Numbered from the stretch's first letter, positions 37,423-61,285 are shown. The stretch is 64,000 nt of DNA from Monocercomonoides exilis PA203 (GCA_001643675.2 LSRY02000039.1:434001-498000); one strand, 5' to 3'. A program made the numbers and translations. The notes: generated by a model from the letters alone, not told the origin.

Positions 37423-37667
37423 AAGAAAGTATGAAAAGATCAAGAAAGAGTGTTTATGAAGTTAAAGAAATGACAATGAAAGCTTGGGTTTTATTCTTAT
37501 TTGTATTTATAAGTTATATAATTTGAAAAGTCGCAAATAATAAATTTCTGGGTTAAAGCTTGAATGAATTTTTCTGAAAAATGATCAAATAATGTTCGTA
37601 TTTTTTTATTCCAGATATTTAACATTTGCACCTGTACTGTAAGAATAAAAATTATATATATATATAT

Positions 37668-37935
37668 GGGACAAAATATTTGACTCCAGGCATTTTCATT
37701 GAAAAATTATGTACTTTTCATCAACTTTTTGAGAACAAAAAACAAAATGAGAATGAGCCCATTTTTTGATATTCGTGATATATCACAATACTTTATGTTT
37801 TGTTTTTAACGATGCCTGTTTGCGGATTTGAAAATCATATTTATTTTGTAATCAAAGAAAGCGAAATAAAGTTATGAGAGAAGCAATTTTTTCATGCTTT
37901 GTGTATAAAAAGCTTGAAAGTCCGTATTTTCCCCG
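37668..37935. mobile_element. MITE family B (~268 bp; GGGACAAAAT...TATTTTCCCC)
   Basis: Homologous along its length to 54955-55222 and (reverse complement) 42941-43209; preceded by a (TA)n tract. Confidence 0.8.
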
Positions 37936-38221
37936 AAATATATTCTTTTTCTTTTTCTATTTTCTTTTCTTTCTCTATTTCTTTTTCCATTTCTTTTTCT
38001 TTTTCTTTTTCTTTTCTTTTCTTTTTCTTTTTCTTTTTTTTTTTTGGTTTATTAAAAGTGATTTATAAAAATTTTTGTTATAAACAGATTGAATAATAAT
38101 ATTTATTTATTTTTTTAATTAAATTAACTTATTAATAAATAAAAAATAAAAGTTTTATTAATTTATTGAGTGGTCCTAAATATTTTGGAATAATTATTTA
38201 TTACAGTATTAAAAAAAATGT

Positions 38222-39183: not shown

Positions 39184-40294
39184 ATGTGAGAAAAAAAAGT
39201 CTTTCATAAAAAATAATTACCATTATGAGTCGTTATTAACTGCAATCGTCTTATCCAACAATCAAACACTTGAAAAATCATATCTGATGAAATATTTGAA
39301 AGTTTATTGTCTTTCAGGAAGCTCCAAACTGCAACAAATTGAAGCTCATCAGAAATTTGATCATTATTCAAACTGATTAACGTGAAAAAATTCAGTTATA
39401 TCGAATATTTTTTGATTATTCATTTTTGATTTCCCATTTTTATATTTTTGCAAAGAAATATGGACCACCCTATCGAAATAACAAATATTAATATATGCTA
39501 ATCCGATGAAACCGAATAACCTTCAGCTGAGGACTAGACTGACTCCATCCTGTTTCTTCATTCTTTCTTAATAATAAAGTGACTTGAAGGACTTGGATCC
39601 AGAATCAGTTTCCCAGGCAAATTAATGTTTGTTGTCGATTTTTTTATAAAAATTAAAATTCAGAAAACTATTCAGAAAACTATTTAAAATTGTGTTGAAA
39701 TTTTTGTCTTAATAACGGGTGAACCAAAATTTGGAAAAAGAAAATTTCTCCCCTGTTTCATTGTCTAAAATGTTTAAAATATCGAGAAAATGTGATTTTT
39801 TACAAATCGAAAGTGTTTGCATTATCATGAAGACTTATTTTATATGTAAATTTTCATCATAAAAAATATATACAGTTAATTAAATAATTTTGAAAAATAT
39901 CTTTGATCTAACCTTCAATAAATTTATTTATTATATGAAAAGTTAAATATGCTGTTTGAGCAGAAATCGAACACAAAAGTTCGTGATTAATATTCTTATG
40001 TATGTTAATAAAAGCATATTATTATTAGCATACTAGCTTTTAATTGAAAATAGCTCTTATTTATCAGTGACACTAACGCATGCTTGTTAACTTTTATGGT
40101 AAGAAATGATTTCAGCGACTTTGGAATTGAAAACTTTTTTATGGAAAACAGAAGTTTATTTTTTATTCTATTTCAATAAAAAATGTATTTATTTAACGAA
40201 AAAGGAGAGATAAATAAATTACAAAAATCTCAGGAATAATAAAAATTTCAGGGAGCAAACCCTTAATAAATATTTCAGATTCACTTATTTTTAA

Positions 40295-41662
40295 ATGCCT
40301 TTCAAAACAGACGAAAAAAGACATTTATCGGAGCTTAACGAATTATTTCAGGACGAGTTGAAGACTATTACGTGGCTTCAAAACAATAATTACATAAAAT
40401 CATCGTTATACTGCTGGAAGTGCTAAAAACACATGAATCTTTAACTTGAAAAAGGAAATTACTACAATTTCAGATGCAAACACTGCAAAAAATCATTGAG
40501 GAGTTATGCCATTTTTGAAAAAATAAAATTTCCTCTGAGAAAAATATGTATTATTGCACTTTATTTTTGGTTGCTTTTGGAGCAGCTGCAAGCTGCAATT
40601 TTGGCGTCAGTCAGTATTTCCACAATTACTAAGCTTTTCACTTTATTTCGGAAAGCTATCGTTTTTCATCAACAACAACATCCTTTCAAAACAGGAGGAG
40701 AAAATAAAACTGTAGAAATTGATGAAACAGCTTTTTACAGAAGAAAATTCAAAGTTGGGAGAAGGAAACCATTGTTATGGATTGTTGGTGGTGTTGAAAG
40801 ACCTGTTGCAACAAAAGGAAGGGGCAATATGTTTTTATCAATTGTACCGAATCGCACAAAACCAGTTTTGCAATCACTTATTGAACAAAAAGTCAAAAAG
40901 AACACAATAATGAACACTGATTGTTGGAAAGCATACAGTTCATTGGACACTCTTGGTTTTGTCCATCGAACTGTGTATCACAAAAATCACTTTGTTGATC
41001 CATTAACAAAGTGCCATACAAATAGAATCGAAGGAGCTTGGTCACTTTTAAGGCATTTTCTTCCTCGACATGGTGTTCAAAGGAAGTACAGTCAAAACCG
41101 GATATAATCACATCGGTTTTTGCAGGACTTTTTGTGACTATATCCGATTATGATTATAAGCGATGTGACTAAACACAGAAAAAAATGAAATTTTATTTTT
41201 GAAATAATTAATTTTGGGTCAATTTTTTTATTTTTGAAAAAACATGACAAATACACAATTTTCAATAGAAATAACAATTTTTATTGTTTTATTATGTTAT
41301 TCAGACTTATTTTAACATTATTTTGAAAAATCGATTTTTGAAATTTTTGATCAAAAAACCGATTTTTCATTGAAAAATCACCCATTATAATTTGAAATGT
41401 GATTATATATTTTCATCTTTGTGATTATATTCGATGGAAAATGAATGAAAAATAGGCCAAAAATGTCGGTGCATGGAAAAATGTGACTATTAACGAATGT
41501 GATTGTATTCGATGTGATTATATCCGGTTTTGACTGTATTTGTCCAATTATTTACAAAAGTTCACTTATCGAAGAAATCCAGAAAAGAATTTTGATGATT
41601 TTTTTGAGATTTTTGTAAAGTCTACGAACGATGATGTTACCGTTTTCGAGGATGATAAATAA
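40295..41662 (+). pseudogene. Merlin/IS1595-family DDE transposase (Merlin-1), inactivated
   Basis: CWKC...RCKHC zinc ribbon, VEIDET.F.RRK...GR, WIVGGVER, VPNRT...L, NTDCWKAY, H.TV.H...FVDP.T..HTNRIEGAWS. Two in-frame TAA in the N-terminus. Excising the MITE 41089-41536 restores HGVQRKYLSNYLQKFTYRRN. Confidence 0.92.
41089..41536. mobile_element. pogo/Tc1-mariner-type MITE (448 bp; TIR CAGTCAAAACCGGATATAATCACATCG; TA TSD) inserted in the Merlin-1 transposase
   Basis: Perfect 27-bp TIRs flanked by TA; removal restores the reading frame. Confidence 0.92.
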
Positions 41663-42736
41663 ATCTGGTATGTGATGCAAATCTCAGAATTTCATTGTTT
41701 CATATTTTGAAAATTGAGAATGTGTAAATTGAGAATTGTTAATAATAAAGTTTTTTTCTTTTATTTTTGAAACAAGCATTTACATTATATTTTTGTTTTT
41801 CTATGAGGATAGAAAACAAGTGTAATATTTTTTTAAAGTATTTTTAGCCAAGCTCATTGTCAATGAGTTTGTTATCTTTTTGAAATTCTTATAAACACAT
41901 TTATTTATTGATATGAAAAGGATAAAAATTTTTTATTTTTCATTTTCTTAAAGTCGATAAAATAGATTAATAATAAATCAAACAAGCGCAGAGGAAATAA
42001 TTGGCATGTTCGAAATAAAAGTTCAAGCTTTTATTCAATGAAGAATTTATATCGCGCAATATTATATAAAAACCATGAAACGATTATTCATTGATGGAAT
42101 GCTTTGTATGAAAATAGCTGCAATCAAGTTTTTAATGAATATCATTCATTCAATATTTGTTTCAAATAATAAACTCATATTAATTACTGTCAATATTGGA
42201 AAAGATAAAGAAGAAATATTTCAAATGCCAAAGGAAATATATAGTAGATTTGACTATATAGGGTATTAATAAACAGACAAACAGAGATTAAAAAATAGAA
42301 AATCAACAATTATTTTTCAAATTTCACATAAGTTTAATATTTTTCTTCTGTCGAATCCGTTTTCAGATTTGTTCATGGAAAAACGCGAAAATCTGAAATT
42401 TCAGTTGTGTCATCATTGCAATGCTTTATATATGTGCAATCTTTTTTTTGCAACATAAATATGGAACAAATAATGGGAATCAAAAACGCTTTGATATTTT
42501 TTTGAATATGAAAACAGTGCATATATTTTGAATGTTGACAAATAAACTCAGGAGATATGCAGTTTTCTGCAGAAGAACGTGATTTCATAAAAATAAGTTC
42601 AAATACAAAAACGTTATTAACTAAGTTTGTTATTTTCATAATTCTAAATGGCATATTCGCAGTTATTGTTAACTTTGAACGGTTTTGTTCCAGAAAAACG
42701 AGAGAAGGAAGAAATGAAAAATTAAAGAACAACAGA

Positions 42737-42761
42737 AAAATCTCCGAAATCATTTCTAACA
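42737..42761. repeat. Degenerate inner terminal repeat of Merlin-1
   Basis: AAAATCTCCGAAATCATTTCTAACA vs reverse complement of the outer end AAAGTCGCTGAAATCATTTCTTACC (20/25 identical; terminal CC damaged); mirrored at 55402-55426. Confidence 0.55.
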
Positions 42762-42940
42762 TTCAAAATTTTCATTGATATGTTATCTGAAAATCCACTT
42801 TCAGTTGATTCATAATATCTTTGTTGTTATAAAATAAACACAGATAAATCATATTTTATTGAAGAAGTGAGACCAACGAAATTAATTGCTTCAATGATTT
42901 TTAGAATTTGAATTTGTAACATTGTTCTTTTTTCCAATAT

Positions 42941-43209
42941 GGGTGGAAAATACGGACTTTCAAGCTTTTTATGCACAAAGCAAGAAAAAATTGTTTCACT
43001 TATAACTTTGTTTCGTTTTCTCGGATTTCAAAATAAATTTGATTTTTGTATCCGCAAACATGCATCGTTGAAATCAAAACATAAGTGTTTGTGACATTTC
43101 ACGAATGCAAAAAAATAAACCCTTTTTTATTGTGTTTTTTGCTAAAAAAAAGTTGACGAAAAGTGCATAATTTTTCATTGAAAATGCCTGAAGTCAAAAA
43201 TTTCGTCCC
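42941..43209. mobile_element. MITE family B, 4-bp TSD ATAT
   Basis: ATAT|GGGTGGAAAATACGG...AAATTTCGTCCC|ATAT. Confidence 0.85.
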
Positions 43210-44371
43210 ATATGAATACTAACGAATGATGTTAATTACCCTTCCATCAATAATAATACATAAATATGAATAATTAATTGAATGAATTAGACTGTTTTTG
43301 AAATAAAAAAAGAAAAAACGATTCGAAAAATGAAATGAAATAATTGTGAATACTTGATGTTTTATTATTTGATGAAGTCAAATTTCCCTCCTGCAACAAA
43401 AGACGTTGTCTAATTTATCAACTTTTTCTATATGAACTTTTCATTAAATTGGTTGTTATTGTTTCACTGCGAAATATTTTTTAATCCTTTCCTTCATTAA
43501 TTTTATCGATCTGCATTTTTCATTGACTTCGCATTTTTCATAATTGATAATACTGTGTTGAATTCATTCAAATTATAATGAAACTGATACTTCTTTTCTA
43601 AAAAAAAAAAAAAAAAAGCAACACTTCAATAAAAATCAAAAATATAACTCAAAAACAATGAAGATGGCAAAAACATCTGAAAAATATTTCGAAAAGCAAA
43701 ATTAATCAAATTATTCCAAGTTGAAATCAACAACAAACTCATTTTCTTTATTCACACACATTTATAAAGCACTAATCACATTTTTTCCATAAACTTGTTT
43801 GAGCAAGCTCTGATTTTCTTTTCCGTAATTTTTATCGAATATCGGCGAGATATCACCTCCCTGAAAATGCAATATCGAAAAATCGGATATGTCAAACATT
43901 TCTTTATGTTTTGCTACTGTTTTTAAAATTATTTGCAAATAGCGAATCTTCTTCTTTGTTTAAAAAAATATTTTTCAAAGGAAAAATTTTATTATGGGCA
44001 TTGATCAATCGCATAATTTGTTCATTTTCATTTCTCATTAAATGGTGAAAAGTTTTATTCAAATACCTCGGTTTGCTTTTTAGATTTTGTTTCTGTTTCA
44101 TGAAATATTGCGTGATTTCTTATATTTTATTTAATTAACAAAAACAGTGACGTGATCTTCAAAATTAACAATTCGAAGCAATGCTTTTGAAATAGTTATA
44201 AGCTAAGTCAAAACTGTATGTTATATTTTGTTGATTTTATAATCTCTCTTTTATTTTATTAAATAATCTTGAATATTCATTAAATTTTTGATAATAACAT
44301 GTGTGACTTCAATTTTCTCTCAATATTGCATAGAATTGATATCGTAAAGCGTATACAAAGAAAGATGCTAA

Positions 44372-44545
44372 GGGAAGCAGCACAAAGCTGGGGGAAGCAG
44401 CGCAAAGCTGGAGGAAGCTGGGGGAAGCTGGGGAAGCTGGGGGAAGCTGGGGGAAGCTGGGGAAGCTGGGGAAGCTGGGGGAAGCTGGGGGAAGCTGGGG
44501 GAAGCTGGGGGAAGCTGGGGGAAGCTGGGGGAAGCTGGGGGAAGC
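44372..44545 (+). repeat. G-rich minisatellite (GGGGGAAGCT)n, ~13 core units
   Basis: Direct observation; the mirrored copy at ~53670-53797 has 8 core units. Confidence 0.95.
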
Positions 44546-44969
44546 AATACAAAATGATTTAAAATGTAGTTTTGACACATTAGTTGATTATTAGTTAATA
44601 ATAATGAAAATTGAAAAAATCGAGATGAGAGAAGTGAGAAGAGAAAGGAGAGAAGAGAGAAATGAAAGGAGAGAAGAGAGAAGAGAGAAAGAAGACAAAA
44701 AATAAATATACAGTTATAATTTGTTTTGCTTTTTTTAATTTATTGTTTTTTGTTAATAAATAAAAAATAAAACATTGAACAGCTCTTATTTTTTATTTAA
44801 TTATTTAATTTGATATTTGCAAAAATTGTTAAAAATTTAACAAATGAATTGGCTGGATTTCTTTGAAATGTGAATGCATCCAGATATTCTTCCAAGTATT
44901 TTTTTCTGACTCCATAAGGAGGAAGATATTTTCTTAACAAATACACGTACTTTCAATTCGTTGAGTATG

Positions 44970-47374
44970 GGCATAGGTCTAAATTGTACCAGTAGTGAAT
45001 TTTACATTTTTTTATGAAATTTCTATATATTATTGATTATTATAATTATTTAACACTGTAGTATCGAAAAAATTTCAAAAATCTTTGATTAAAAAATAAA
45101 ATCCAAAACCATTGATCAATCCCATAATAATATTTGTGTATTTTTATTTTGTGTTTTGTGAACGAATAAGAGCTGTTCTTGGACTATTTTCTGCATTCAT
45201 TGTTTTGTTGTATTTTTTGCATTTCATGCTCTTTTATAAAAAGAACAAATCAGAATCATGTTGTTGATTTTCTTTAAAAATTCAAATTGCAAAATTTGAA
45301 ATGAATGCATTGAGTAATATTCTAAATATCACAACTGTTTTTATAAAGTTCTTATCTGTGTTCAGAAAAATATATCCACAAAAATTCAATTTCTCTGTAT
45401 TTCAAAATTGATGTTCCAATAAAAATTTCACTTGTTAAATCCTTCAACTCAATCTTCATCGCTCCGCCATTCCCATTCGCGCACTCACATCCTACCATCG
45501 TTGTATTCCACCCCACAAATGTCTCTCCTTCCTTCACTCTTTGCCAATACCATCCCTTCTTTTTCAATCAACTTCACATTTCGAATTGTCACATTTGCCA
45601 AAACTCTCTCTTCAGATGCTAATTCAGCTGTTGATGCATCGGTGAACAGCGGTTGAGATATTTTCATGTTTTTGACTCAACATCACTCATTTTCAATCGC
45701 GATAGTGCCATCACAAATATCAATGAAGATATATCTCTCTCTTCTGATATTAAAGAATTGATCAGCACATCTTCCAATGAGAGTGAACCACTACCATCAG
45801 ACACCACAACCACACTCGGCGAAGGATTTATATTTGAGTTACAATCGACTTTCAAATGACTCATTCCAAGATGACCTGTTGACACGCTGAACAGCGTTCC
45901 TGCTGCTGATTGGGAAGAAGAAAATGCTCCTGTTCCAATCGAACTCTCCGTCCTTCCTTTCCCAATGATTGAAATCTCCATTGATCCAATATCAATCGTT
46001 GTTGTCTCGCTCGTGTGATTTCCTTCCATCAGCGTGACTGATGAGCTCAGCTCTTCCAAGCCCGTCTCCACTGCGTGTCCCACCGTCTTGCAAGGTGCCG
46101 ACTTGCCCATTCCACACAGCCCACTCGAATCCTTTCCATTCACCCCTACAAACAGAACCTTCGACCATTCGTTCAACAAATCCTTCTTTTCCGTGTGTTG
46201 AAATGTCCAACTTGTTGAACTCGAATAATTATATCCATAACATACCCTCCTACTATCTGTATTCGTTGTGTAACATTCATGAAATGGATTTCCTGATGAA
46301 TTAAAAAGTTCAAAGCGATCATAATACATCACATCGTGGCCATAAGGAGGATTGGCCGAACATTTGCATTCATGAAAGAACAAAAAATAACAATATATTT
46401 TATCATTTGGAGTTGTTGGTTGATTTGGATGAAACCAAAATCCTCCTCCATACGCCGCTGCTGAGCATGAAATAAATTGTAAGCTCCTCATTTTGAATTG
46501 AGTAATTGGAATGTTAATACAGCGCATTCCTCCACCATCATTTCCAGTAACCGAGCATGAAGTGAAACTGCAGTCAAACACACACGCACTCTCCCCTTCT
46601 CCATTTTCTTCTCCAATGCATCCTGTTCTTGAAACCTGAAAATTGTCGATATAAAGTCCTCCTCCATAGCCATTTGCTTTTCAATTCTGGAATTCACATC
46701 TGCTGATCAGAACACATGTAGAAATCGTGTTAACACATGTCCCTCCTCCAATCCATGTTCGAACAGTGCATGAGTCGAATGTGTTATTTGCAATGTCAAC
46801 TGATGAAATATTGAAGCAATTAATTCCTCATCCTGCATAATGGGTATAGCAGTTGCTGAAAGTGCAATGAAAAACTGAAAGTTCTCTATTTCCCTTGTTG
46901 TGCATGAAAATAGCCCCTCCACTCGATATCCCATCAGTGAACGAGTCGCTTTCTCCTGTTGTCTTCGATCCACTCCATTCACACCTAATATATGAATTTT
47001 CCAAACTTAGAGATCCTCTCTCTTCAGAAACTTCCAATTATCAAATATGCATTATTCTTCTCACATAATTTGAATACAACTTATAAGAAGCAAGTTGATA
47101 AAAAGTATTTTATGAAACACGTTGAAATTTATTTATGTGAAATTAAATTTGGTTATTAACAATTTTATTGTCACAACACGTTCATAAAATACGAAATGAA
47201 AAAGAAACAAATATTATTATGGGATTGATCAATGTTTTTGGATTTTATTATTAAATCAAAGATTTTTGAAATTTTTTCGATAATATAGTGTTAAATTATT
47301 ATAATAATCAATGATATATAGAAATTTCATAAAAAAATGTAAAATTCACTACTGGTACAATTTAGACCTATGCC
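44970..47374. mobile_element. Gene-capturing non-autonomous TIR element A (2.4 kb, ~168-bp TIRs, 8-bp TSD TGAGTATG)
   Basis: TGAGTATG|GGCATAGGTCTAAATTGTACCAGTAGTG ... CACTACTGGTACAATTTAGACCTATGCC|TGAGTATG; TIR similarity extends over ~44970-45137 / ~47207-47374. Confidence 0.9.
45430..46990 (-). pseudogene. Captured internal fragment of the giant receptor family
   Basis: CEWSGSKTTGESDSFTDGISSGGAIFM, PYGHDVMYYD, ECYTTNTDSRRVCYGYN and LFSVSTGHLG align with the ~28970-30540 part of the giant gene; frameshifted; no start, TM or kinase part. Confidence 0.9.
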
Positions 47375-48539
47375 TGAGTATGAGCTTTAGTTATCGGATC
47401 AACAAATCTTTTGCTGTGGTTAACTGTTTCGTGAAGATAATCCTTTTCGTTGATTCCGTTATAACCCTTCCAGCAATCTGTAAATATCTTTGTCTTTTTT
47501 GAAACATGCTCCTCGATTGATGAATGAAGAATTTCACGAGTTCTCTTTATGACTGGCAATAAAAAAAGCTTTGTTTTTTCTCCTTTTTTCTTTGGCCTCT
47601 CTATTCCACCCAATATCCAATTTTGCCTTTTCCCTCTTCCTCTATTGTATTTTCTCTTTGGGAAAACGGCTTCATCAATTTCAACTTCAACATTTTCTCT
47701 TCCAATTTTTCCCTTATGTTTCTTTTTGATGAGCGAAATTGTCTGTCTGAAATTTGCAAACATTTTGCTAACTGTAATTGGAGATTTTCCAGTGATAAAA
47801 GAACAATGTTTTTGAGACATTCCTGTCCAAAAACACAATGCCATCAAACAAACACAAGAAATTCTTATTTTGAATTGGCTAAAGTGGTTGTTGGCCTTAA
47901 TGTTAATTTGTTTGTGTCTGCAAACAAATGGCAAAATTTTTTTGAAAAGTTCCATGACTTTAATTTTGTCCCACAAAAGATCATAAAAGATCAAAAAATA
48001 TCGATTATTCCGTTCCCATTTTAGTTATATAAATGTTATTTGTAGTTATTTATTTCGCTTTTTATAGAAAAATAATAAACAAATTCGTTAATATCATATA
48101 ATTTTTTATCTTTATTTTGAAATATTCATTTGAAAGATTCTGCTTTCCAGCTATTTCAGTCAAATGAGTTGCATGTTTTTATTTCTTCATTTTCATTTCA
48201 TCTTTTCGAATATTCGTTATGATTTTATGAACAGGAGCTAAGATTTAATTATTTTCTTTTATGAAAGACAAATAATATTTGATTTTCTTGAATAATTGAA
48301 TTTTTTTTTTAGAAATTTTCAAACAGAAAAAAATACATCAAAACAACACTCGAAACAATCGAAAGATATTCGAAAAATTGAAAGCGTTGAGCAACAATAA
48401 ATGTTATCATCCAGAAATGCAACATGAAATGTTATTTTTCAAAACAAATCTTCATTTTTTCAAACTCAAAAATACAATCTCTTCTCTTAAAAAGATTCAA
48501 AAATTTTTATATTAAACAACTTGTTTTCATCTCAGTACG

Positions 48540-51500
48540 TGTTGTTTTCTTCGTCTATTTCACAGTTCTGGAAGTGGAGAAGAGAAGAAGGCTGGATGGG
48601 ACAAGCAGCCAGTATTCTCTTCATCTTCATCTTCATCATCAGCGCGTAAAATTGATTCTTCGGATGCCTCGGCTGTGGCGGTGTCATACACGTCGGAAGT
48701 GGTGATGGACGACATCGAGAGGCAGCTGGAGTGTATGAAAATCACAGACAGTCGTTACTGAGGGAGCAACAGACGCTCGAAAAATATGTTGTGGAGTGAC
48801 ATAGCTGGTTGCATTGCACAAAAGTGTTGTGTGTGAATACGATGTGGAGCTTTCGGAGATGCTTTCGGTTCCGCTGGTGGCGCCTCTTTCGTAGCTTGCA
48901 GCGTCGGTGGGCACGAAATCGGGGAGCAAGCGGATCTTTGCATCGGCAGATGTGAATGCAATCTGTTTATAACATTGCAGCTGGCTTTGCGATCACCGCA
49001 GTCGATGCGTGTGGTGGTGAGGCTGGACGATGAAGTGATGGGGCGAGGGGTTGCAGTGTGTGAAGTGGGGGGGATTGTGGGGAAAGGGTTGGATGCGGAG
49101 AGAATGAGGAAGGAGGAAATGGTTCTATCACCAGCAGCGATTGCGCTGGAGGTGCTGGAGGAGTGGGAAGAGGCAGAGGAAGGAGAAATGGAAGAGACAG
49201 AGGGAGGTGATGGGAATGAGGAGAAAGGTGGGCGTCCGATAGCGCACAGAGAGTTTGTGGAGGGAATTAAAGAGAATCAGGGGAAGCTTGAAGAAGCGAT
49301 TGCACAGCTGGTTGTGGAGGCGCTTGGGCTGAGTCGGCTGAGGTTTGTGAAGGCAAGGACAGCTACTGAGGCGAGCGCAGGCAAAAAGTTTTCAGTGCAA
49401 CCTGAAATGCGCAATTTTTCTCCAGCAGATGGCATTCGATAGGAGATATCAAGAGCAGAAGAAGTAGCAGATGTGTCTTTAAGAATAACTTCAGATGGAA
49501 GTGAAGGAAGTGCGAGGAACAGATGGAAATATAAGTTGATCATTTGACAATAATTGAGGAAAAAGATAAATCCAATGAAGAAGTCTGGTGAAAAAAGTCG
49601 TTTGCTTAATGAGGAGTGATAATTAGAAGAGGAGGAAGAGGAGGAAAATGGAGGAAAATTTGAGTTCACCTGGAAGAACGGAGTGACGAGGTTGTTATAT
49701 CTGATCGAGTGCCGATGAGCAGTGCCTTGACACAAAAAGGCAATCAGCGAATGGTGCGTGTGTGCATTGCAAACGGTCAGACTTTTGATGTGCTGGGCAA
49801 GTTGAACATGCAGCTGCCTTGAAGCTGTGCAAAGATGCAGATGAAATGGTGGAGATCCAGTTGAGAAACAAAGTCGAAGAGGAATCAAACTTTAGAGCCG
49901 TGTGAGATTTTCATGCAGCATGGGACTAAGAGTGAAGCAGGGATGAAGCAGGCGATTGAGGAAGATTTGGCGGTTCTGTTTTTCGTACTTGTTAAATGGT
50001 TCGAGCACAAAGCTGAGGAGAACGAGTTTGTGATTGATATCTTTATTAGCCATAATGAGCTGATCCACATTGCGAATGCGCACTCTTTGATGAAGCAGCG
50101 GCTTCTGTGCTGTGGAGTGACAGCGTCGTTAGGTATTGCACATGGATAATTCAGTGAATGTGATGTTCACAACGGAAAAAAGAATTGAAGCTTCGCGGCA
50201 GAGCAGGGAAGGAGCAGAAGCATGTAATGCGAAGGTGATTCTGAGCAATTGTTCAGCGACACTATCAGTGCATGCGTTTGAGTGTGTGTTTGATGGGGCG
50301 CCTGATGCGGATAAACAGCTGATATGGCTTGGTGAGTGAATGGAGGTGGAGGTGAAGAAGGTATGGATGCGGGTTGATTCAACACGTCAAACAAGAGGCT
50401 CGGTACAGAAGAGGTGTTTATTCAGAGAAGACAGTCGAATGTTGTACAAACAATAGGGGAATGCGGCTATGATGCTTAGAACGCCATTTCTGACTGACGA
50501 CGCTTTCTCGGTGGTTGTTCCGATGGATGCTCCCATGGCATTGAAGATGGCATCAGAGAATCTGCATTATAGTTTTGTTTCTTCTTCTTCGTCGTCGTCA
50601 TCGTCAATTTCTATTATTTTTGAGTGTCTGTTCCTTCTTCTCATCCTCCTCTTCATCTCAAATTTCTCATCTGTCACATTCCTCTTCTTCTCTCTCTTCA
50701 TCAGCCTCAGCACATGCATCTCTGGAAGCACTTGCTTTGAACAGCATGTCAAATGAGTGTGTTCTGACGAGTTGCTTGTTGATGTTTCTTGTTTCATTGG
50801 CTTTTCGGTATTTGCGTAGCTCCATCGACCTCCTCATCTCCTGATGCGACGAATGGGAAGAGTGTGACGAAGGCATTGGAAGATGTTCATCTTCAAGAAA
50901 AGTGGGGGATTTGAACAGACGAGGAGACGAATGGAAGAAGCGCTTCTGCGACGAGGTGTGTGAAGATAAAGAGTATGTTCCAATGAGAAGCGGTGGGGCA
51001 TCAGCAGTGGAGAAGGAAAGAGGAGCAGACAGAGCTGATGAAAGAGATGAGGAGGAAGTGGTGGAGATGATAACAGACGAAGTGACAGCAGCTGGCAAGT
51101 CTGATGAGGTAGTTGGGGCTGCAACAGCAGCAGATTGCTGGAGGCTTCCTGGCTAAGCCAAATGAGACGGGAGGGAAGGAGAGCTTGCCTGTGTGAGTGA
51201 TTGCTGCGATGTGGCTGAGGAAGTGCGAGTGTGGAGAGAGTTTGTGTTCTGAGAGGAAGACAACGATTGAGACTGAGACTGAGATTGAGATTGTGATGAA
51301 GACTGAGGCTGAGGTTGTCTGGTGAGTGCAGGGCCTGGCGATGTGGATATAGACATCTGCTGGATGGGCTGAGAGAAGGAAAGAAGAGCAGAGAAAGAGG
51401 ACGAAGCAAGAGATGTTGGAGAAGTCAGAGAGGCCAAGGAAGAAGAAGAAGAGGAAGAAAAAGGTGGAAGGGAAGAAGAAGACGACAACGAAGAAGAAGA

Positions 51501-51760
51501 AGAAAATGTGATGGATGCAGTCGAAGATACCCCAAGCCCAATCGTCGGAGCCAACAGTGATGAAGACACAGAAGACGATGTGTTATCAAAGAAAGAGCGA
51601 AGCGTGGCTAACTCAAAAGTGGTAGAAAATGGAGTGTTTGAGGTGCTTATCTCAGAGCGGTGAGCTGTTGATGAGTGCGTGCGTGCTATTATAGTGGTTG
51701 TTTGAGTGATGGCTGGTACAGGGAAGGTGAGGGCAGTGGCTGAGACGGAGGAAAAGGAGG
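48540..51760 (+). pseudogene. Captured, decayed host gene fragment(s) of unknown family
   Basis: GC-richer, codon-like sequence with acidic/Ser tracts, many stops and frameshifts (e.g. ORF 48975-49442), enclosed by element B. Confidence 0.55.
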
Positions 51761-52520
51761 ATACTGTTAATGAAGGAGAAATAGATATAGAACAAGAAAA
51801 AGAACAAGAAGAAGAACAACAAGAAGAAGAAGATGATGATGATGAAGAGATATTGAAAATGGAGTGAAGAGGAAGGGAAGATGGAAGAGAGAAGATGAGT
51901 TTTGATAATTCTGTTTCAATACTTGCTGTTATCATCGATGAATTGGATGTTTCACTTGAATCGGAGACTGACCAGCCACTTTGATCATCACTTCCTCGGA
52001 TTTCATGCTTCTGTCCAGTAAAGTCCAATTCATCACTCATCAAAATCATTCCACTCACAGTCACTTTCTTTGGCCCTGTTTGCCTTGTGAAGCAGTGTTT
52101 CATTGTCAAACAAGGGAATTGGACGATTCCACAATGTGAGTGATCAGATGCCTCGATGTTATTCACATGTATTTCTTCTGGAGTAGGAATGAGATAGATG
52201 CACAGAGGGATAGCCACACTGTTGTTTCCGTTGTCATATCCCCTCACTCTGTCAACAGAATTCAAAGAGGCTGTAACACATGTAATATTTTGTGATTTTG
52301 CAGTCACTTCCAGATTTGGTGAAATGACAAAAATATCTCTTCCCCATTTGGCTGTATTTGTTCCGAATGAAAACAATATCAGGAAATTTGTATTCTCATT
52401 CATCAATTGAAGAAAAATTCCTCCTCCAAGACCATTTGATGCAGAGCAATAGCATCCATCACACATCCCGCCTTTCACTTTCACTTCATTTCCATTCCCA
52501 ACACATAGCATCATTGATCA
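51760..52520 (-). pseudogene. Captured fragment of a giant-receptor paralogue
   Basis: GLGGGIFLQL, TAKWGRDIFV, IPLCIYL...IHV...ASDHSHCGIVQFPCLTM: the same module junction as in the giant protein. Confidence 0.8.
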
Positions 52521-53669
52521 TCAATTCTCTGAATTCACACTTCAATATCCTGATATTGCTCTCGAATTCTGATCTTTATTTGTATTGTTATTGAAGAAAC
52601 AAATGTTGGCTATCAACTGCGAACTTTTCAATAAAAAAAGCATGTTTGAATAATAAATTAAAAAATTATATTTATATGTTAAAATTGAATGGAAACCACT
52701 AAACTTATCCGATTAACAGTTGCATCGTATATGTGTGTTCTATCTTCGCAATCATGTTGAGTTCAGGCTCATAATGCAAATGAAAAATACTAAACAAATG
52801 AAATTTTGAATTAACATTGAAAATCAAGTTTGTCAGGATAAAGAATCGAAACATACCTTGCACTTTTTATAAATAAACAATTGCAAAGTGGTTCAATCAA
52901 ATGATGCTCTTTTTCATTGAAAAACTGATATTTAAATTTTGATCAAAAAATATGATACATAATTTTTTGATTCATAATATTTTTTCTCATTTAGATGTTT
53001 GCAATAAACCAACAAACATTGTTGTGTAAGTTAGTTTTAATAATTAGAATTATGGAAACGGAATGATAATAAATTAACTTCCACGGGTCAAATTTTTGAT
53101 CTGATGTTACTTTTCAAAAAAATTCAGACAAATCTTGTTGCGTTATCCTCTAAAACATACAATTTCATATTTCTTTTGCATTTCCAGCAATATTTGTTTT
53201 TTTTAAGTATCATATTCTCCAATAGCCAGTTAACTGTTTCTTTTTCTGTTGAAAAGATTCGAAATAACTTCTTAAAGTATGTTCTCGATTCTTTTTGATT
53301 TTGCATAAGAAATATAAATTGATCAGCTTTTAAACAACAAAGCAAAAGTTATGGAAATCCAGCCAATTCATTTGTTAAATTTTTAACAATTTTTGCAAAT
53401 ATCAAATTAAATAATTAAATAAAAAATAAGAGCTGTTCAATGTTTTATTTTTTATTTATTAACAAAAAACAATAAATTAAAAAAAGCAAAACAAATTATA
53501 ACTGTATATTTATTTTTTGTCTTCTTTCTCTCTTCTCTCTTCTCTCCTTTCATTTCTCTCTTCTCTCCTTTCTCTTCTCACTTCTCTCATCTCGATTTTT
53601 TCAATTTTCATTATTATTAACTAATAATCAACTAATGTGTCAAAACTACATTTTAAATCATTTTGTATT

Positions 53670-53797
53670 GCTTCCCCCAGCTTCCCCCAGCTTCCCCCAG
53701 CTTCCCCCAGCTTCCCCCAGCTTCCCCCAGCTTCCCCCAGCTTCCCCCAGCTTCCTCCAGCTTTGCGCTGCTTCCCCCAGCTTTGTGCTGCTTCCCT
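53670..53797 (-). repeat. Minisatellite (CTTCCCCCAG)n, 8 core units
   Basis: Direct observation. Confidence 0.95.
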
Positions 53798-54954
53798 TAG
53801 CATCTTTCTTTGTATACGCTTTACGATATCAATTCTATGCAATATTGAGAGAAAATTGAAGTCACACATGTTATTATCAAAAATTTAATGAATATTCAAG
53901 ATTATTTAATAAAATAAAAGAGAGATTATAAAATCAACAAAATATAACATACAGTTTTGACTTAGCTTATAACTATTTCAAAAGCATTGCTTCGAATTGT
54001 TAATTTTGAAGATCACGTCACTGTTTTTGTTAATTAAATAAAATATAAGAAATCACGCAATATTTCATGAAACAGAAACAAAATCTAAAAAGCAAACCGA
54101 GGTATTTGAATAAAACTTTTCACCATTTAATGAGAAATGAAAATGAACAAATTATGCGATTGATCAATGCCCATAATAAAATTTTTCCTTTGAAAAATAT
54201 TTTTTTAAACAAAGAAGAAGATTCGCTATTTGCAAATAATTTTAAAAACAGTAGCAAAACATAAAGAAATGTTTGACATATCCGATTTTTCGATATTGCA
54301 TTTTCAGGGAGGTGATATCTCGCCGATATTCGATAAAAATTACGGAAAAGAAAATCAGAGCTTGCTCAAACAAGTTTATGGAAAAAATGTGATTAGTGCT
54401 TTATAAATGTGTGTGAATAAAGAAAATGAGTTTGTTGTTGATTTCAACTTGGAATAATTTGATTAATTTTGCTTTTCGAAATATTTTTCAGATGTTTTTG
54501 CCATCTTCATTGTTTTTGAGTTATATTTTTGATTTTTATTGAAGTGTTGCTTTTTTTTTTTTTTTTAGAAAAGAAGTATCAGTTTCATTATAATTTGAAT
54601 GAATTCAACACAGTATTATCAATTATGAAAAATGCGAAGTCAATGAAAAATGCAGATCGATAAAATTAATGAAGGAAAGGATTAAAAAATATTTCGCAGT
54701 GAAACAATAACAACCAATTTAATGAAAAGTTCATATAGAAAAAGTTGATAAATTAGACAACGTCTTTGTTGCAGGAGGGAAATTTGACTTCATCAAATAA
54801 TAAAACATCAAGTATTCACAATTATTTCATTTCATTTTTCGAATCGTTTTTCTTTTTTTATTTCAAAAACAGTCTAATTCATTCAATTAATTATTCATAT
54901 TTATGTATTATTATTGATGGAAGGGTAATTAACATCATTCGTTAGTATTCATAT

Positions 54955-55222
54955 GGGACGAAATTTTTGACTTCAGGCATTTTCAATGAAAAATTATGCA
55001 CTTTTCGTCAACTTTTTTTTAGCAAAAAACACAATAAAAAAGGGTTTATTTTTTTGCATTCGTGAAATGTCACAAACACTTATGTTTTGATTTCAACGAT
55101 GCATGTTTGCGGATACAAAAATCAAATTTATTTTGAAATCCGAGAAAACGAAACAAAGTTATAAGTGAAACAATTTTTTCTTGCTTTGTGCATAAAAAGC
55201 TTGAAAGTCCGTATTTTCCCCC
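54955..55222. mobile_element. MITE family B (arm duplicate), TSD ATAT
   Basis: Mirror copy of 42941-43209. Confidence 0.85.
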
Positions 55223-56501
55223 ATATTGGAAAAAAGAACAATGTTACAAATTCAAATTCTAAAAATCATTGAAGCAATTAATTTCGTTGGTCTCACTTCT
55301 TCAATAAAATATGATTTATCTGTGTTTATTTTATAACAACAAAGATATTATGAATCAACTGAAAGTGGATTTTCAGATAACATATCAATGAAAATTTTGA
55401 ATGTTAGAAATGATTTCGGAGATTTTTCTGTTGTTCTTTAATTTTTCATTTCTTCCTTCTCTCGTTTTTCTGGAACAAAACCGTTCAAAGTTAACAATAA
55501 CTGCGAATATGCCATTTAGAATTATGAAAATAACAAACTTAGTTAATAACGTTTTTGTATTTGAACTTATTTTTATGAAATCACGTTCTTCTGCAGAAAA
55601 CTGCATATCTCCTGAGTTTATTTGTCAACATTCAAAATATATGCACTGTTTTCATATTCAAAAAAATATCAAAGCGTTTTTGATTCCCATTATTTGTTCC
55701 ATATTTATGTTGCAAAAAAAAGATTGCACATATATAAAGCATTGCAATGATGACACAACTGAAATTTCAGATTTTCGCGTTTTTCCATGAACAAATCTGA
55801 AAACGGATTCGACAGAAGAAAAATATTAAACTTATGTGAAATTTGAAAAATAATTGTTGATTTTCTATTTTTTAATCTCTGTTTGTCTGTTTATTAATAC
55901 CCTATATAGTCAAATCTACTATATATTTCCTTTGGCATTTGAAATATTTCTTCTTTATCTTTTCCAATATTGACAGTAATTAATATGAGTTTATTATTTG
56001 AAACAAATATTGAATGAATGATATTCATTAAAAACTTGATTGCAGCTATTTTCATACAAAGCATTCCATCAATGAATAATCGTTTCATGGTTTTTATATA
56101 ATATTGCGCGATATAAATTCTTCATTGAATAAAAGCTTGAACTTTTATTTCGAACATGCCAATTATTTCCTCTGCGCTTGTTTGATTTATTATTAATCTA
56201 TTTTATCGACTTTAAGAAAATGAAAAATAAAAAATTTTTATCCTTTTCATATCAATAAATAAATGTGTTTATAAGAATTTCAAAAAGATAACAAACTCAT
56301 TGACAATGAGCTTGGCTAAAAATACTTTAAAAAAATATTACACTTGTTTTCTATCCTCATAGAAAAAACAAAAATATAATGTAAATGCTTGTTTCAAAAA
56401 TAAAAGAAAAAAACTTTATTATTAACAATTCTCAATTTACACATTCTCAATTTTCAAAATATGAAACAATGAAATTCTGAGATTTGCATCACATACCAGA
56501 T

Positions 56502-57871
56502 TTATTTATCATCCTCGAAAACGGTAACATCATCGTTCGTAGACTTTACAAAAATCTCAAAAAAATCATCAAAATTCTTTTCTGGATTTCTTCGATAAGT
56601 GAACTTTTGTAAATAATTGGACAAATACAGTCAAAACCGGATATAATCACATCGAATACAATCACATTCGTTAATAGTCACATTTTTCCATGCACCGACA
56701 TTTTTGGCCTATTTTTCATTCATTTTCCATCGAATATAATCACAAAGATGAAAATATATAATCACATTTCAAATTATAATGGGTGATTTTTTCAATGAAA
56801 AATCGGTTTTTTGATCAAAAATTTCAAAAAATCGATTTTTCAAAATAATGTTAAAATAAGTCTGAATAACATAATAAAACAATAAAAATTGTTATTTCTA
56901 TTGAAAATTGTGTATTTGTCATGTTTTTTCAAAAATAAAAAAATTGACCCAAAATTAATTATTTCAAAAATAAAATTTCATTTTTTTCTGTGTTTAGTCA
57001 CATCGCTTATAATCATAATCGGATATAGTCACAAAAAGTCCTGCAAAAACCGATGTGATTATATCCGGTTTTGACTGTACTTCCTTTGAACACCATGTCG
57101 AGGAAGAAAATGCCTTAAAAGTGACCAAGCTCCTTCGATTCTATTTGTATGGCACTTTGTTAATGGATCAACAAAGTGATTTTTGTGATACACAGTTCGA
57201 TGGACAAAACCAAGAGTGTCCAATGAACTGTATGCTTTCCAACAATCAGTGTTCATTATTGTGTTCTTTTTGACTTTTTGTTCAATAAGTGATTGCAAAA
57301 CTGGTTTTGTGCGATTCGGTACAATTGATAAAAACATATTGCCCCTTCCTTTTGTTGCAACAGGTCTTTCAACACCACCAACAATCCATAACAATGGTTT
57401 CCTTCTCCCAACTTTGAATTTTCTTCTGTAAAAAGCTGTTTCATCAATTTCTACAGTTTTATTTTCTCCTCCTGTTTTGAAAGGATGTTGTTGTTGATGA
57501 AAAACGATAGCTTTCCGAAATAAAGTGAAAAGCTTAGTAATTGTGGAAATACTGACTGACGCCAAAATTGCAGCTTGCAGCTGCTCCAAAAGCAACCAAA
57601 AATAAAGTGCAATAATACATATTTTTCTCAGAGGAAATTTTATTTTTTCAAAAATGGCATAACTCCTCAATGATTTTTTGCAGTGTTTGCATCTGAAATT
57701 GTAGTAATTTCCTTTTTCAAGTTAAAGATTCATGTGTTTTTAGCACTTCCAGCAGTATAACGATGATTTTATGTAATTATTGTTTTGAAGCCACGTAATA
57801 GTCTTCAACTCGTCCTGAAATAATTCGTTAAGCTCCGATAAATGTCTTTTTTCGTCTGTTTTGAAAGGCAT
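56502..57871 (-). pseudogene. Merlin-1 transposase, duplicate copy with the same lesions
   Basis: Identical 203-aa ORF at 57059-57670; same two TAA stops and same MITE insertion. Confidence 0.92.
56628..57077. mobile_element. pogo/Tc1-type MITE (arm duplicate)
   Basis: TA|CAGTCAAAACCGG...CCGGTTTTGACTG|TA. Confidence 0.92.
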
Positions 57872-58479
57872 TTAAAAATAAGTGAATCTGAAATATTTAT
57901 TAAGGGTTTGCTCCCTGAAATTTTTATTATTCCTGAGATTTTTGTAATTTATTTATCTCTCCTTTTTCGTTAAATAAATACATTTTTTATTGAAATAGAA
58001 TAAAAAATAAACTTCTGTTTTCCATAAAAAAGTTTTCAATTCCAAAGTCGCTGAAATCATTTCTTACCACTTTTATTTATTTATGTGATCCACCTGATGT
58101 TTAATTTATATTTGTTTGCAACGGAACACAAATAGCATTATTTGTTACTTTATAATTGAAAAATATTTATTTTGCATTTTTTTTTTCAAACATTCACTTT
58201 TTTAGATATATTAATGTTTATTTTTTTTTAGCAACGATCATAATATCATTTTATGAACAAAATTCGCATAGTTTAACATTGATAAAGCAAAAAAAGCTCG
58301 ATGTTAAGAAACAAAAACAATGCACAATATAAAAGTTTGTGTTTTGTTCTGAAAAAATGAATTGTTAAAATGAGTATTTATTTGTCTTTCAAGTTTATTT
58401 GATAAATCACATTTAAAAGTGATTGAAGATTAGATGTGAAGCAGAACGAGAAGGAGAGGAAGCACTGTTTGTATGGAAT

Positions 58480-61285
58480 GCGAAAGAAGGGATGGGAATG
58501 AATGGAAGCTGGATAGAAGGTGGAGCGATAATGAATGTGAAATCTCCAATATCAGTGACAAATGGAGTTGAATTGGAGTTTTTGAATAGCAGAGTGAGCG
58601 GAGTGACAGTGGAAGGTGGAAGTGGAAAAGGAGGATGCATTGGTACTGAGATAAAAGAAGGAGGTAGCGCGATTGTGAATAACTGCAGTTTTTCATCAAC
58701 ATGCACAGGTGGAGGTGGGACGAAAGGAGGAGGGATGATGATTTCAGTTGAGTGTGGAGGAAGTTTGGAGATTAAAAGCGTAACATTCACAGGATGCCAG
58801 GTGCCAACAGAGGACAGCTTGCAGAAAGGAAGGGGAATTGGAGGAGGGATGTTTGTGAGTTTGGATGAGATGATTGAATCATTTTCGTTGGGGAGCGTGA
58901 TATTTGAAAGATGCAATGCTTGGAAAGGAAAGAAAACATTTGTTTCAGGATGGGATTTGAGTGAGATTGTGAAGAAGGAGCACTTGAAATGGGAGATGAG
59001 TCCAGAGGAGTTGGAGTCATTGGATGAATTGTGTGGATGGGAGAGGAAGACAACAGGAGAGGAGGGATATGTGATCCCATTGGTTGTGTATTTGTGGAGT
59101 AATTGGAGTGGGGATGGGTTTGTATCAGTTGAGAAAGGAGGAGATTTCAGTGGGTGTGGGTTTTCTGAGGCTCCATGTTTATCGATTGACCACTTGATAT
59201 CACTTCGATGCCCAACACTTGGAGAAGGGGAAACACACATCAGCATTGTGGGATCAGGGCTGTTGAGCCATTCCATTTCATTTTCTTTTATTTCATCATC
59301 AATTTCAGGGTCACAAAAAGTGGTGATTGAAGGGACAAAGAAAGGAACAAGTGTGACAATCAGTGATGAAGATGAGAATGATTTGGATGACGGTTCAATG
59401 ATCTCATCGAATGTGAGTCTGTCATTTGTGAATGTTTCATTCACAAAACCCAGCATCACCACCCATCATGAAGTATTTATTGAATCCTCAGGAACAAGTT
59501 CATTATTGTCGGTTGCTGATTGTTCATTTGGTTCATTGACAGGATTGACAGAGACAGCAGGATATTGCCTGATGAGAGTGAATGGAAAAAGTCTTGCAAT
59601 TGAGGATTTCATGCTTTCTGAGTTGAATGTGGCAAAAGGGTTTGTGGAGTTTGGAGCAGAAATGGAGGTGATTTCAGTTGTGAATGTTTCAATATCGAAC
59701 ACAACAATATCAGTGTGTAGCATGATCACGCTGACTGAGGGATCACACAATTTCCAATTCACAAAAAGAAAAGAAAGAAACGTGAACAAAATTGAGAGTG
59801 AATGAGTCAACATTCACAAACATCACATGCTTTGAGAACAGAGCATGCATGATGAGTGTGGGATCATTTTCATCTGGGATGGAATGTGAGATCGAAGGGT
59901 GTGCGCTGACGAAGTGCATGAGTGAGAGGAGCAAAGAAGGAGGAGGGATGAAGATGTGTTTGAAGAGAGGGGAATTAGAATTGAAAGTGAGAGGATGCTC
60001 GTTGGTGATGTGTATGTACTCGACAGCGGATGGGAGAGGAGGAGGACTGATAATTGTTGCACTTGACCCGAAGGGCAGAGGAGCAGGTGCATTTGGGGGT
60101 TTTGGAGTGAGGCTGGAGGGGATGCGATTCATGATGAATGATGCGCATGAGGGGAAGGATGTGTTCATCAGATGTGACTCTATTGACTTGCTGCTGAATG
60201 TGAGATTGTTTGATATGGACTTCAGCCAGGATGCTTTGAAGTCGAATAACTCGATTTGCGGGAGGGATGATATCGAAAAGGTTGATGTTGATCTGATTTC
60301 GCTGATCACATTCCTTTATTCGGTGCAGGTGTTTGTGAATGCAAATGGAAGCGATAGCACGCAGTGCGGAGCACAGGAGAAGCCAAACCAAAGCATTTGG
60401 TGGAGAGTTCGGCATATCTGAAGGAGTGTTGCGAATTTGATTTTTATTAATGGAGAACATATGATTTGTGGAGAGTGTGTGAGATTGGAGATTTATATGT
60501 GAAATCATTGAAAAGAGCGCAGGCATCCATTCATTTCGAATGAAAGATAGAAAAAACATCAGAGGAGGACAGCATCATGAAGTTTGTGAAAGAGAGTGCA
60601 GTGGAGAGATGTATTTTTGTGTTTGGGGAGATGTTTGGGTGAGATGGGGAAAGCATTGTCAAAGAGAAGGATTGGTGATTGGAGATTTCGGAGTGTTTGT
60701 TCAGCTCATGTGGGAAAGGGCAAGTTATGAAGAGCAGGATTGTGAGTGTGGAGAGCAGAGAGCTGAAAATTGCAGAAACAATATTTTACGAGATTTGCAC
60801 CACAGAACCACTTCTATCATCAACATAAGAGGGAAAGATTGTGGTTTTTGATACAAACATTTCAGAGATTGTTAGTAAATGAGAAGTGATTCGCATCGGA
60901 GGGAAGGTTGATATGGAGATGAAGGATGTGAGTTTTGAGAATAACTCTGTTTGTGGGAATGAGAGTGTGATGAAGATGAAAAAAGCCGAAAAGAGAATGA
61001 ATGTGCTGAACTGCTCTTTTTTACTTAATGCAAGGGCACGAACGAAAGAGGGAGAATTTTGAAGATTTGTGAGTGTGTGGATGTACTGATTGAATCATGT
61101 TTGTTTGATGGGAGTGCATAAGTGAGAAATAAACTTCATTTAAATGTGGAAGAAAAAGAGATATGCAGATGGGTGGATCTCTTGTTGATGCTGTGAAGAG
61201 TTCTATTTTGATGAAAGATTAAACAATATCTCATTTGCCAGATGGTGGAATAACAATGAGTGGAGAAAGAATTAGAATTGAAGCA
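58480..61285 (+). pseudogene. Truncated, frameshifted giant-receptor paralogue (mosaic)
   Basis: Aligns with ~32420-35220 of the giant gene; ~58588-59586 is near-identical to ~32519-33517 while the remainder is divergent, with frameshifts (~59800, ~60420) and stops. Confidence 0.9.

Follow-up and report, generated by a model that had tools for sequence, protein, structure and literature searches.

Merlin transposons have already been published from Monocercomonoides sp. PA203, where they form at least 7 families, number more than 100 copies and carry 8-bp target-site duplications (TSDs) (PMC8101967). Their terminal inverted repeats (TIRs) measure 23-29 bp in most Monocercomonoides families and 24-462 bp across the superfamily, and the inner borders of some 'could be extended' (PMC8101967). 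Here we describe a locus of Monocercomonoides exilis PA203 at which an 18-kb unit with Merlin ends is bounded by inverted arms of 4.7 kb. It lies in a stretch of 64,000 nucleotides (GCA_001643675.2 LSRY02000039.1:434001-498000, or G000:C35:434001-498000 in our numbering), which we call the window; positions are counted from its first letter, and all genome-wide counts refer to this one assembly of 82,301,135 bases in 101 contigs. The arms are built from an element that we name Merlin-1 (reference copy C21:719222-722823, 3,602 bp, with TIRs of 265 bp), and nested within it is a member of a second Merlin family with TIRs of about 1 kb, which we name LT. Both resemble the published Monocercomonoides Merlins in their DDE_Tnp_IS1595 transposase, 5'-GG termini and 8-bp TSDs, and differ from them in the 265-bp TIRs of the one family, the perfect TIRs of about 1 kb of the other and, at this locus, the 4.7-kb arms (PMC8101967). 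A search for the terminus sequences of Merlin-1 and LT in the partly incomplete supplementary text of that paper gave no Monocercomonoides match, just unrelated strings.

The lengthening of TIRs has likewise been described before. In Galileo, an element of the P superfamily in Drosophila mojavensis, TIRs have grown by the inverted recruitment of adjacent internal sequence (PMC3573991). The likeness to our locus is threefold: sequence next to one TIR is repeated in inverted orientation before the other, the TIRs contain internal tandem repeats, and the longest TIRs occur in copies that lack an intact transposase (PMC3573991). However, Galileo belongs to another superfamily and its TIRs reach about 1.25 kb (PMC3573991), whereas the arms described here are 4.7 kb long and bridge the TIR pairs of two different nested elements. 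Experiments in yeast are also relevant, as inverted repeats near a break can divert its repair, catch the broken end and serve as template for inverted duplications (PMC6103520). Our literature search for composite Merlin transposons gave papers on bacterial resistance only. The locus is one old Merlin with a second Merlin nested inside it, and we consider, with a probability of roughly 0.6, that repair in place bridged both nested repeat pairs and kept the old TSD.

The evidence begins with the boundaries of the unit. The left arm (40098-44861, plus strand) and the right arm (53354-58068, minus strand) align in inverted orientation with 0 mismatches and 10 gap openings over 4,768 columns (gapped alignment of 40097-44861 with 58069-53354). 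The gaps are indels of 1-2 nt, mostly in homopolymer runs, together with one 47-nt difference in the length of a 10-bp minisatellite, (GAAGCTGGGG)n, that lies in the LT TIR at 44364-44550 on the left and at 53670-53810 on the right. The unit starts with GGTAAG and ends with CTTACC, its left terminus being GGTAAGAAATGATTTCAGCGAC and its right terminus the exact reverse complement of this. On both sides stands the octamer ACTTTTAT (40090-40097 and 58069-58076), an 8/8 match for which the chance at a fixed position is about 3e-5 given the base composition. The unit sits in a repeat, and in six paralogous copies of that repeat (L012-L017) a single octamer joins the contiguous left and right flanks, in the form ACTTTAAT, ACTTCCAT, ACTTGTAT or ACCTTTAT. 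Because these empty sites hold one octamer where the window holds two, the outer ends of the unit bound a true insertion with an 8-bp TSD.

An earlier note on this DNA had described the inverted arms, their end motifs and the direct repeat around them, and had assigned the unit to Merlin with a real TSD; gapped alignment, terminus comparison and the empty sites bear it out on all of these points. The TIRs start with GG in both families (GGTAAGAAATG in Merlin-1, GGCGAGATATC in LT) and the DDE_Tnp_IS1595 domain (Pfam PF12762) is recognised in an open reading frame (ORF) of the arm (E = 4.8e-13) and in one of the core (E = 1.9e-10). The note was also right that all three transposase copies inside the unit are dead, since each is broken. 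It had asked whether other Merlin-1 copies are flanked by ACTTTTAT too. They have other flanks, AGACGCTT/AGACTCTT at C21 (a 7/8 TSD match) and no match at C33, which together with the empty paralogous sites rules out that the octamer is a family-wide flank and not a TSD. A giant element of the Maverick/Polinton kind with long TIRs was considered and rejected: the termini, the 8-bp TSD and the DDE domain are all of Merlin type, and the larger ORFs belong to no other Pfam family.

Each arm contains Merlin-1 positions 1-3014, as numbered in the C21 reference copy, with the same two nested inserts. The Merlin-1 terminus occurs in the window at the two outer ends only, so that each arm lacks its inner terminus. 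Positions 3015-3338 are absent from the window and occur genome-wide at C21, C33 and C5 only; in their place stands the right arm, which mirrors the left one; we take the left arm as the original. As the arms show 0 substitutions, compared with 5-7 % between Merlin-1 copies, they are duplicates of one another and not independent insertions. Two separate Merlin-1 insertions were rejected on this ground and on the shared truncation point and shared nested MITEs (miniature inverted-repeat transposable elements). What the arms represent is a single left half together with its mirror image, not two complete modules.

The inner kilobase of the left arm (43844-44861, plus strand), which holds the minisatellite, is the left TIR of LT. 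We identify it as the TIR of a second Merlin family because the same sequence is found elsewhere in the genome as inverted pairs, which bound elements of 2.6-2.8 kb on contigs C9, C7 and C25. The TSDs of this family are also 8 bp long (CTGCTATG, 8/8, at C9; 7/8 at C7). The C9 copy (L006:2138-4955, that is G000:C9:987137-989954) measures 2.8 kb and has a perfect TSD; its two TIRs, of 971 nt, are 100 % complementary. Its open transposase frame of 310 codons covers the full DDE_Tnp_IS1595 domain (positions 6-153 of 153, E = 2.6e-18), and it is apparently an intact autonomous Merlin. In the window, LT extends from 43844 to 54324 with termini GGCGAGATATCACC, was inserted after Merlin-1 position 3014, and has an interior collinear with the C9 copy except for two insertions, which we call Pack-A and Pack-B. 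What lies between the arms, 8.5 kb in all, is therefore LT interior together with two more nested transposons, each of a multi-copy family.

This composition decides against the architecture that the earlier note had proposed, in which two independent and complete inverted Merlin modules mobilise 8.5 kb of unrelated cargo in the manner of Tn5 or Tn10. The arms of Tn5 and Tn10 are complete insertion sequences with both ends, each able to move alone. Inverted transposase-bearing arms, a central segment and a single TSD around the whole are indeed common to those elements and to our locus, and the TSD is equally expected if it dates from the original 3.6-kb insertion. Here, however, each arm has one end, both arms stop at Merlin-1 position 3014, they are copies of one another where independent copies would differ by 5-7 %, and the supposed cargo is the interior of an element whose own TIRs form part of the arms. 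A genome search found no further full copy of the unit with another TSD, and the junction between Merlin-1 and LT occurs at this locus alone. We regard a Tn5/Tn10-like origin as hardly credible. A eukaryotic compound transposon of the Tn10 kind is not established by this locus, and the claim should be dropped.

The junctions around LT reveal the order of events. In uninterrupted Merlin-1 the sequence CGAATATC runs on into CATTATTTTC, and in both arms it is followed by GGCGAG. To the right of LT one would expect a second CGAATATC and then Merlin-1 positions 3015-3602; what is seen is GATATTCG, followed by the mirror image of positions 3014 to 1. Since the flanks of LT are mirrored and form no direct TSD, the mirror copy is younger than the LT insertion and took its template at the LT terminus. 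It starts exactly at that terminus and ends exactly at the Merlin-1 terminus, while at the inner arm border (44861/53354) the TIR of the LT family also has its inner end (L006 position 3108). Given these borders, the extent of the arms is set exactly by two inverted-repeat pairs that existed before. The reverse order, LT entering a Merlin-1 palindrome that was already there, was also considered; it is rejected by the lack of a direct 8-bp TSD and by the exact mirror-image flanks that meet at the LT termini.

A repair event of the following kind would produce such a structure. A 3.6-kb Merlin-1 with 265-bp TIRs would have entered the TIR of an older repeat, giving rise to the ACTTTTAT duplication, and would then have gained two MITEs. 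An LT-family Merlin with TIRs of about 1 kb would have followed, inserting after Merlin-1 position 3014; Pack-A and Pack-B would also have inserted into LT, with no order relative to the mirror copying implied. A break would then have arisen in the short right part of Merlin-1, between the right TIR of LT and the right TIR of Merlin-1, and its repair would have used the element's own left half as a template in inverted orientation. Each broken end would have had inverted homology at hand there, the right TIR of LT pairing with its left TIR and the right TIR of Merlin-1 with its left one. In the repair, a mirror image of positions 3014 to 266 would have taken the place of 325 bp (Merlin-1 3015-3338). 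Both nested repeat pairs would thereby have been joined into arms of 4.7 kb, with the original TSD unchanged. We infer the break, its position and the placing of the event at the present locus. Such a repair explains where the arms end, why 325 bp are lost, why the flanks of LT are mirrored and how the TSD was kept, and it needs no transposase. It differs from the palindromes studied in yeast, which involve destabilising dimers and break-induced replication, in that a second inverted-repeat pair would have closed it neatly, leaving a stable locus that is known from sequence alone (PMC6103520).

Three features of the genome favour repair in place: the composite is single-copy, there are just seven Merlin-1 termini (three pairs and one fragment), and an intact Merlin-1 transposase is found nowhere in the assembly. 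The ORF of the C21 copy stops after 248 codons, that of the arms has 2 stops and that of the C33 copy 3. Four more termini belong to a sub-family that is about 76 % identical.

The two TIRs of an element evolve in concert in both families. In the two ordinary copies of Merlin-1 the left and right TIRs differ at 1/265 positions, compared with about 5 % between copies, and 10 copy-private states are common to both TIRs while 2 occur in a single TIR. In five LT copies TIR identity is 99.8-100 % within a copy versus 85-93 % between copies, and 73 private states are common to both TIRs, with 2 in one only. Because private states are mostly common to both TIRs, a mutation in one TIR is regularly copied to the other, and this points to intra-element conversion as the probable source of the homogeneity within copies. 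Coding sequence also lies inside the TIRs. The Merlin-1 TIR (40098-40362, plus strand; from the TIR alignment and the ORF start in L001) holds the ATG and the first 22 transposase codons, and that of LT holds the last 65 nt of the ORF, whose 3' end falls inside the left TIR in the C9 copy. This indicates that the TIRs of both families were extended at an earlier stage. The marks of extension known from Galileo recur at the locus, where the right arm mirrors Merlin-1 positions 266-3014 while the native right part is missing, and paired TIRs are homogenised family-wide.

A second large palindrome is found at C25:768987-784152 (L010, L007, L011). It is 15.2 kb long, with arms of 6.38 kb (3 mismatches, 16 gaps) around a centre of 2.4 kb in which two ORFs of 228 and 250 codons match no Pfam family. 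Inside it an LT-family copy (C25:773727-779414) has exactly mirrored flanks, and the outer edges of the palindrome lie at a foldback MITE without a target duplication. As this palindrome has no TSD, the mirror process can act without transposition. It is possible, though doubtful, that such copying is a general habit of the long-TIR Merlins of M. exilis. Frequent end-to-end copying would then overrun the TIR border, both inward and into the flanks, and build palindromes on a kilobase scale (4.7-kb arms here, 6.4-kb arms at C25), making Merlin a recurrent, transposase-independent generator of large palindromes, some of which, including the 18-kb one, would still be mobile as giant foldback Merlins.

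Several points weigh against repair at this locus as the whole explanation. In-place repair and a later transposition of the finished unit yield the same final sequence, and nothing in one genome proves that the event happened here. A perfect 8/8 TSD is what one expects of a recent insertion; by our estimate, though, about 57 % of such pairs would likewise still be intact at a divergence of about 3.5 % per site. The 0 substitutions over 4.7 kb could reflect a very recent event of any kind. Finally, the TIR identities within copies come from a nanopore assembly polished with short reads, in which polishing may have caused some homogenisation.

The alternative that these points raise is that a foldback-like composite formed at another locus and was moved here whole, all 18 kb of it, by a Merlin-1 transposase acting in trans, with ACTTTTAT duplicated on arrival. 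In its favour, the Merlin-1 terminus is perfect at either outer end (22/22 positions as at the ends of the C33 and C21 copies), the duplication around the unit is perfect and validated by the empty sites, and in sequence a left TIR of Merlin-1 can stand for a right one, so that a pair of left ends should serve as substrate. Against this, no second composite and no other junction of Merlin-1 with LT exists in 82 Mb. The family amounts to three elements and a fragment, stop codons are present in all of them, and it has no derived MITEs, which would have been a sign of recent activity. The movement must also post-date the insertion of LT. The LT interior has kept 97.8 % identity with the intact copy, while copies of Merlin-1 are 5-7 % apart. 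It takes one step more than repair in place, and the similar C25 palindrome has no TSD. We judge movement of the finished unit to be unlikely. The earlier note had concluded that the 18 kb inserted as one piece; this stands as a possible history but not as a demonstrated one, given the unique junction and a repair that leads to the same sequence.

The arms might, in principle, be a product of assembly. The genome was assembled with Canu from 12.9 Gb of nanopore reads with a read N50 of 8.9 kb (PMC8767320). In an ordinary Merlin-1 with a nested LT, the assembler could have switched strand through the LT TIR and then again through the Merlin-1 TIR, creating a false arm, and the differences between the arms are of a type that is typical of nanopore assemblies, i.e. 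indels alone and mostly in homopolymer runs. However, two exact strand switches would be required, one of them within a 265-bp repeat, and the displaced 325-bp Merlin-1 segment is found on no orphan contig. A large contig continues on both sides of the locus, the 8.5-kb centre is asymmetric, and the right flank leads into unique DNA. The independent indel and minisatellite differences imply that the arms were assembled separately, and a coverage of about 150x (our calculation, from 12.9 Gb of reads and 82 Mb of genome) should provide many reads across a 4.7-kb arm. An artefact is therefore very improbable.

If the arms were indeed formed by repair in place, the locus would be a cleanly resolved example of a tenfold growth of transposon terminal repeats, through templated repair that bridges two nested pairs. 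It would be a case of TIR growth in families whose ends evolve in concert, as in LT, where 73 of 75 private TIR states are common to both ends. This bears on the use of TIR length in transposon classification, for which it is an unreliable character, on the origin of large palindromes in a protist genome with about 46 % repeats, and on the annotation of the many 'unclassified' repeats of this assembly. We expect these results to be of use to transposon specialists and to hold no surprise for the wider field.

The remaining features of the unit belong mostly to elements nested in it. The first of the two inserts in each arm, at 41087-41537 on the left, is a Tc1/mariner-like MITE with termini CAGTCAAAACCGG and a TA duplication, of which the genome holds more than 30 copies. 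On its downstream side this MITE cuts off the Merlin-1 transposase remnant (40295-41038, plus strand), in which 2 TAA stops occur and whose identity with the C21 copy is 90 %. The second (42940-43205) is a MITE-like insert of 266 bp, with a further copy at 37659-37939 (83 %). Within LT, Pack-A (44970-47374) has GGCATAGG termini, TIRs of about 190 bp and a perfect TSD, TGAGTATG, at 44962-44969 and 47375-47382; at least 12 full-length relatives are 69-79 % identical. It is followed by an internal segment of LT (47375-47929, minus strand) with a DDE_Tnp_IS1595 transposase fragment, which is the part that is 97.8 % identical to the intact C9 copy. Pack-B (47930-53125) is 5.2 kb long, with a GGCAAAAT terminus and a TSD (AAACAAAT/AGACAAAT) that matches at 7/8, and has at least 14 collinear relatives in the genome at 78-85 % identity.

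Both Pack elements carry sequence resembling the neighbouring beta-helix receptor-like genes, including in Pack-B a weak beta-helix receptor-like ORF (51153-52514, minus strand). The interior of Pack-A (45445-46999) aligns in inverted orientation, over 1.6 kb and with 68.6 % identity, with 28957-30532, part of a large G-rich gene upstream. It also matches dozens of loci elsewhere, many of them clustered on contig C80. The suggestion in the earlier note that the 18-kb unit is a vehicle for receptor fragments is unsupported, as these pieces reside in Pack-A and Pack-B, families that have copies of their own elsewhere.

Outside the window, a third Merlin-1 copy (C33:856719-870401; L002, L005) retains all of positions 1-3602, with a 9.1-kb insertion at position ~350 and one of about 1 kb at ~2443. 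Its flanks, GGATGAAG and ATCTGAAA, form no target duplication. A database comparison of the Merlin-1 transposase gave one distant match only (27 % identity, E = 7e-10), which was of no aid in family placement. The genome as a whole has more than 150 Merlin transposase matches, and as many of these remain open for 300-400 codons without a stop, activity may persist in several Merlin families.

The repeat that hosts the unit (window 39785-40097 and 58077-58500) has its own peculiarities. Its family is often found as inverted pairs, and at many loci such paralogues lie 1-20 kb apart, e.g. at C34:538285/541570, C22:1277364/1278408 and C1:2186714/2189767. These pairs resemble the long TIRs that a further DNA transposon family would have. 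A neighbouring ORF belongs to a protein cluster in which the known members come from Preaxostyla. Directly to the right of the unit is a beta-helix ORF of 460 codons, Chlam_PMP/DUF1565-like by its features; a search of the contigs of other assemblies found no independent record of this receptor ORF. It has a paralogue 26 kb upstream, and the two (58423-59802 and 32375-33589) are 87.7 % identical in protein over 405 residues.

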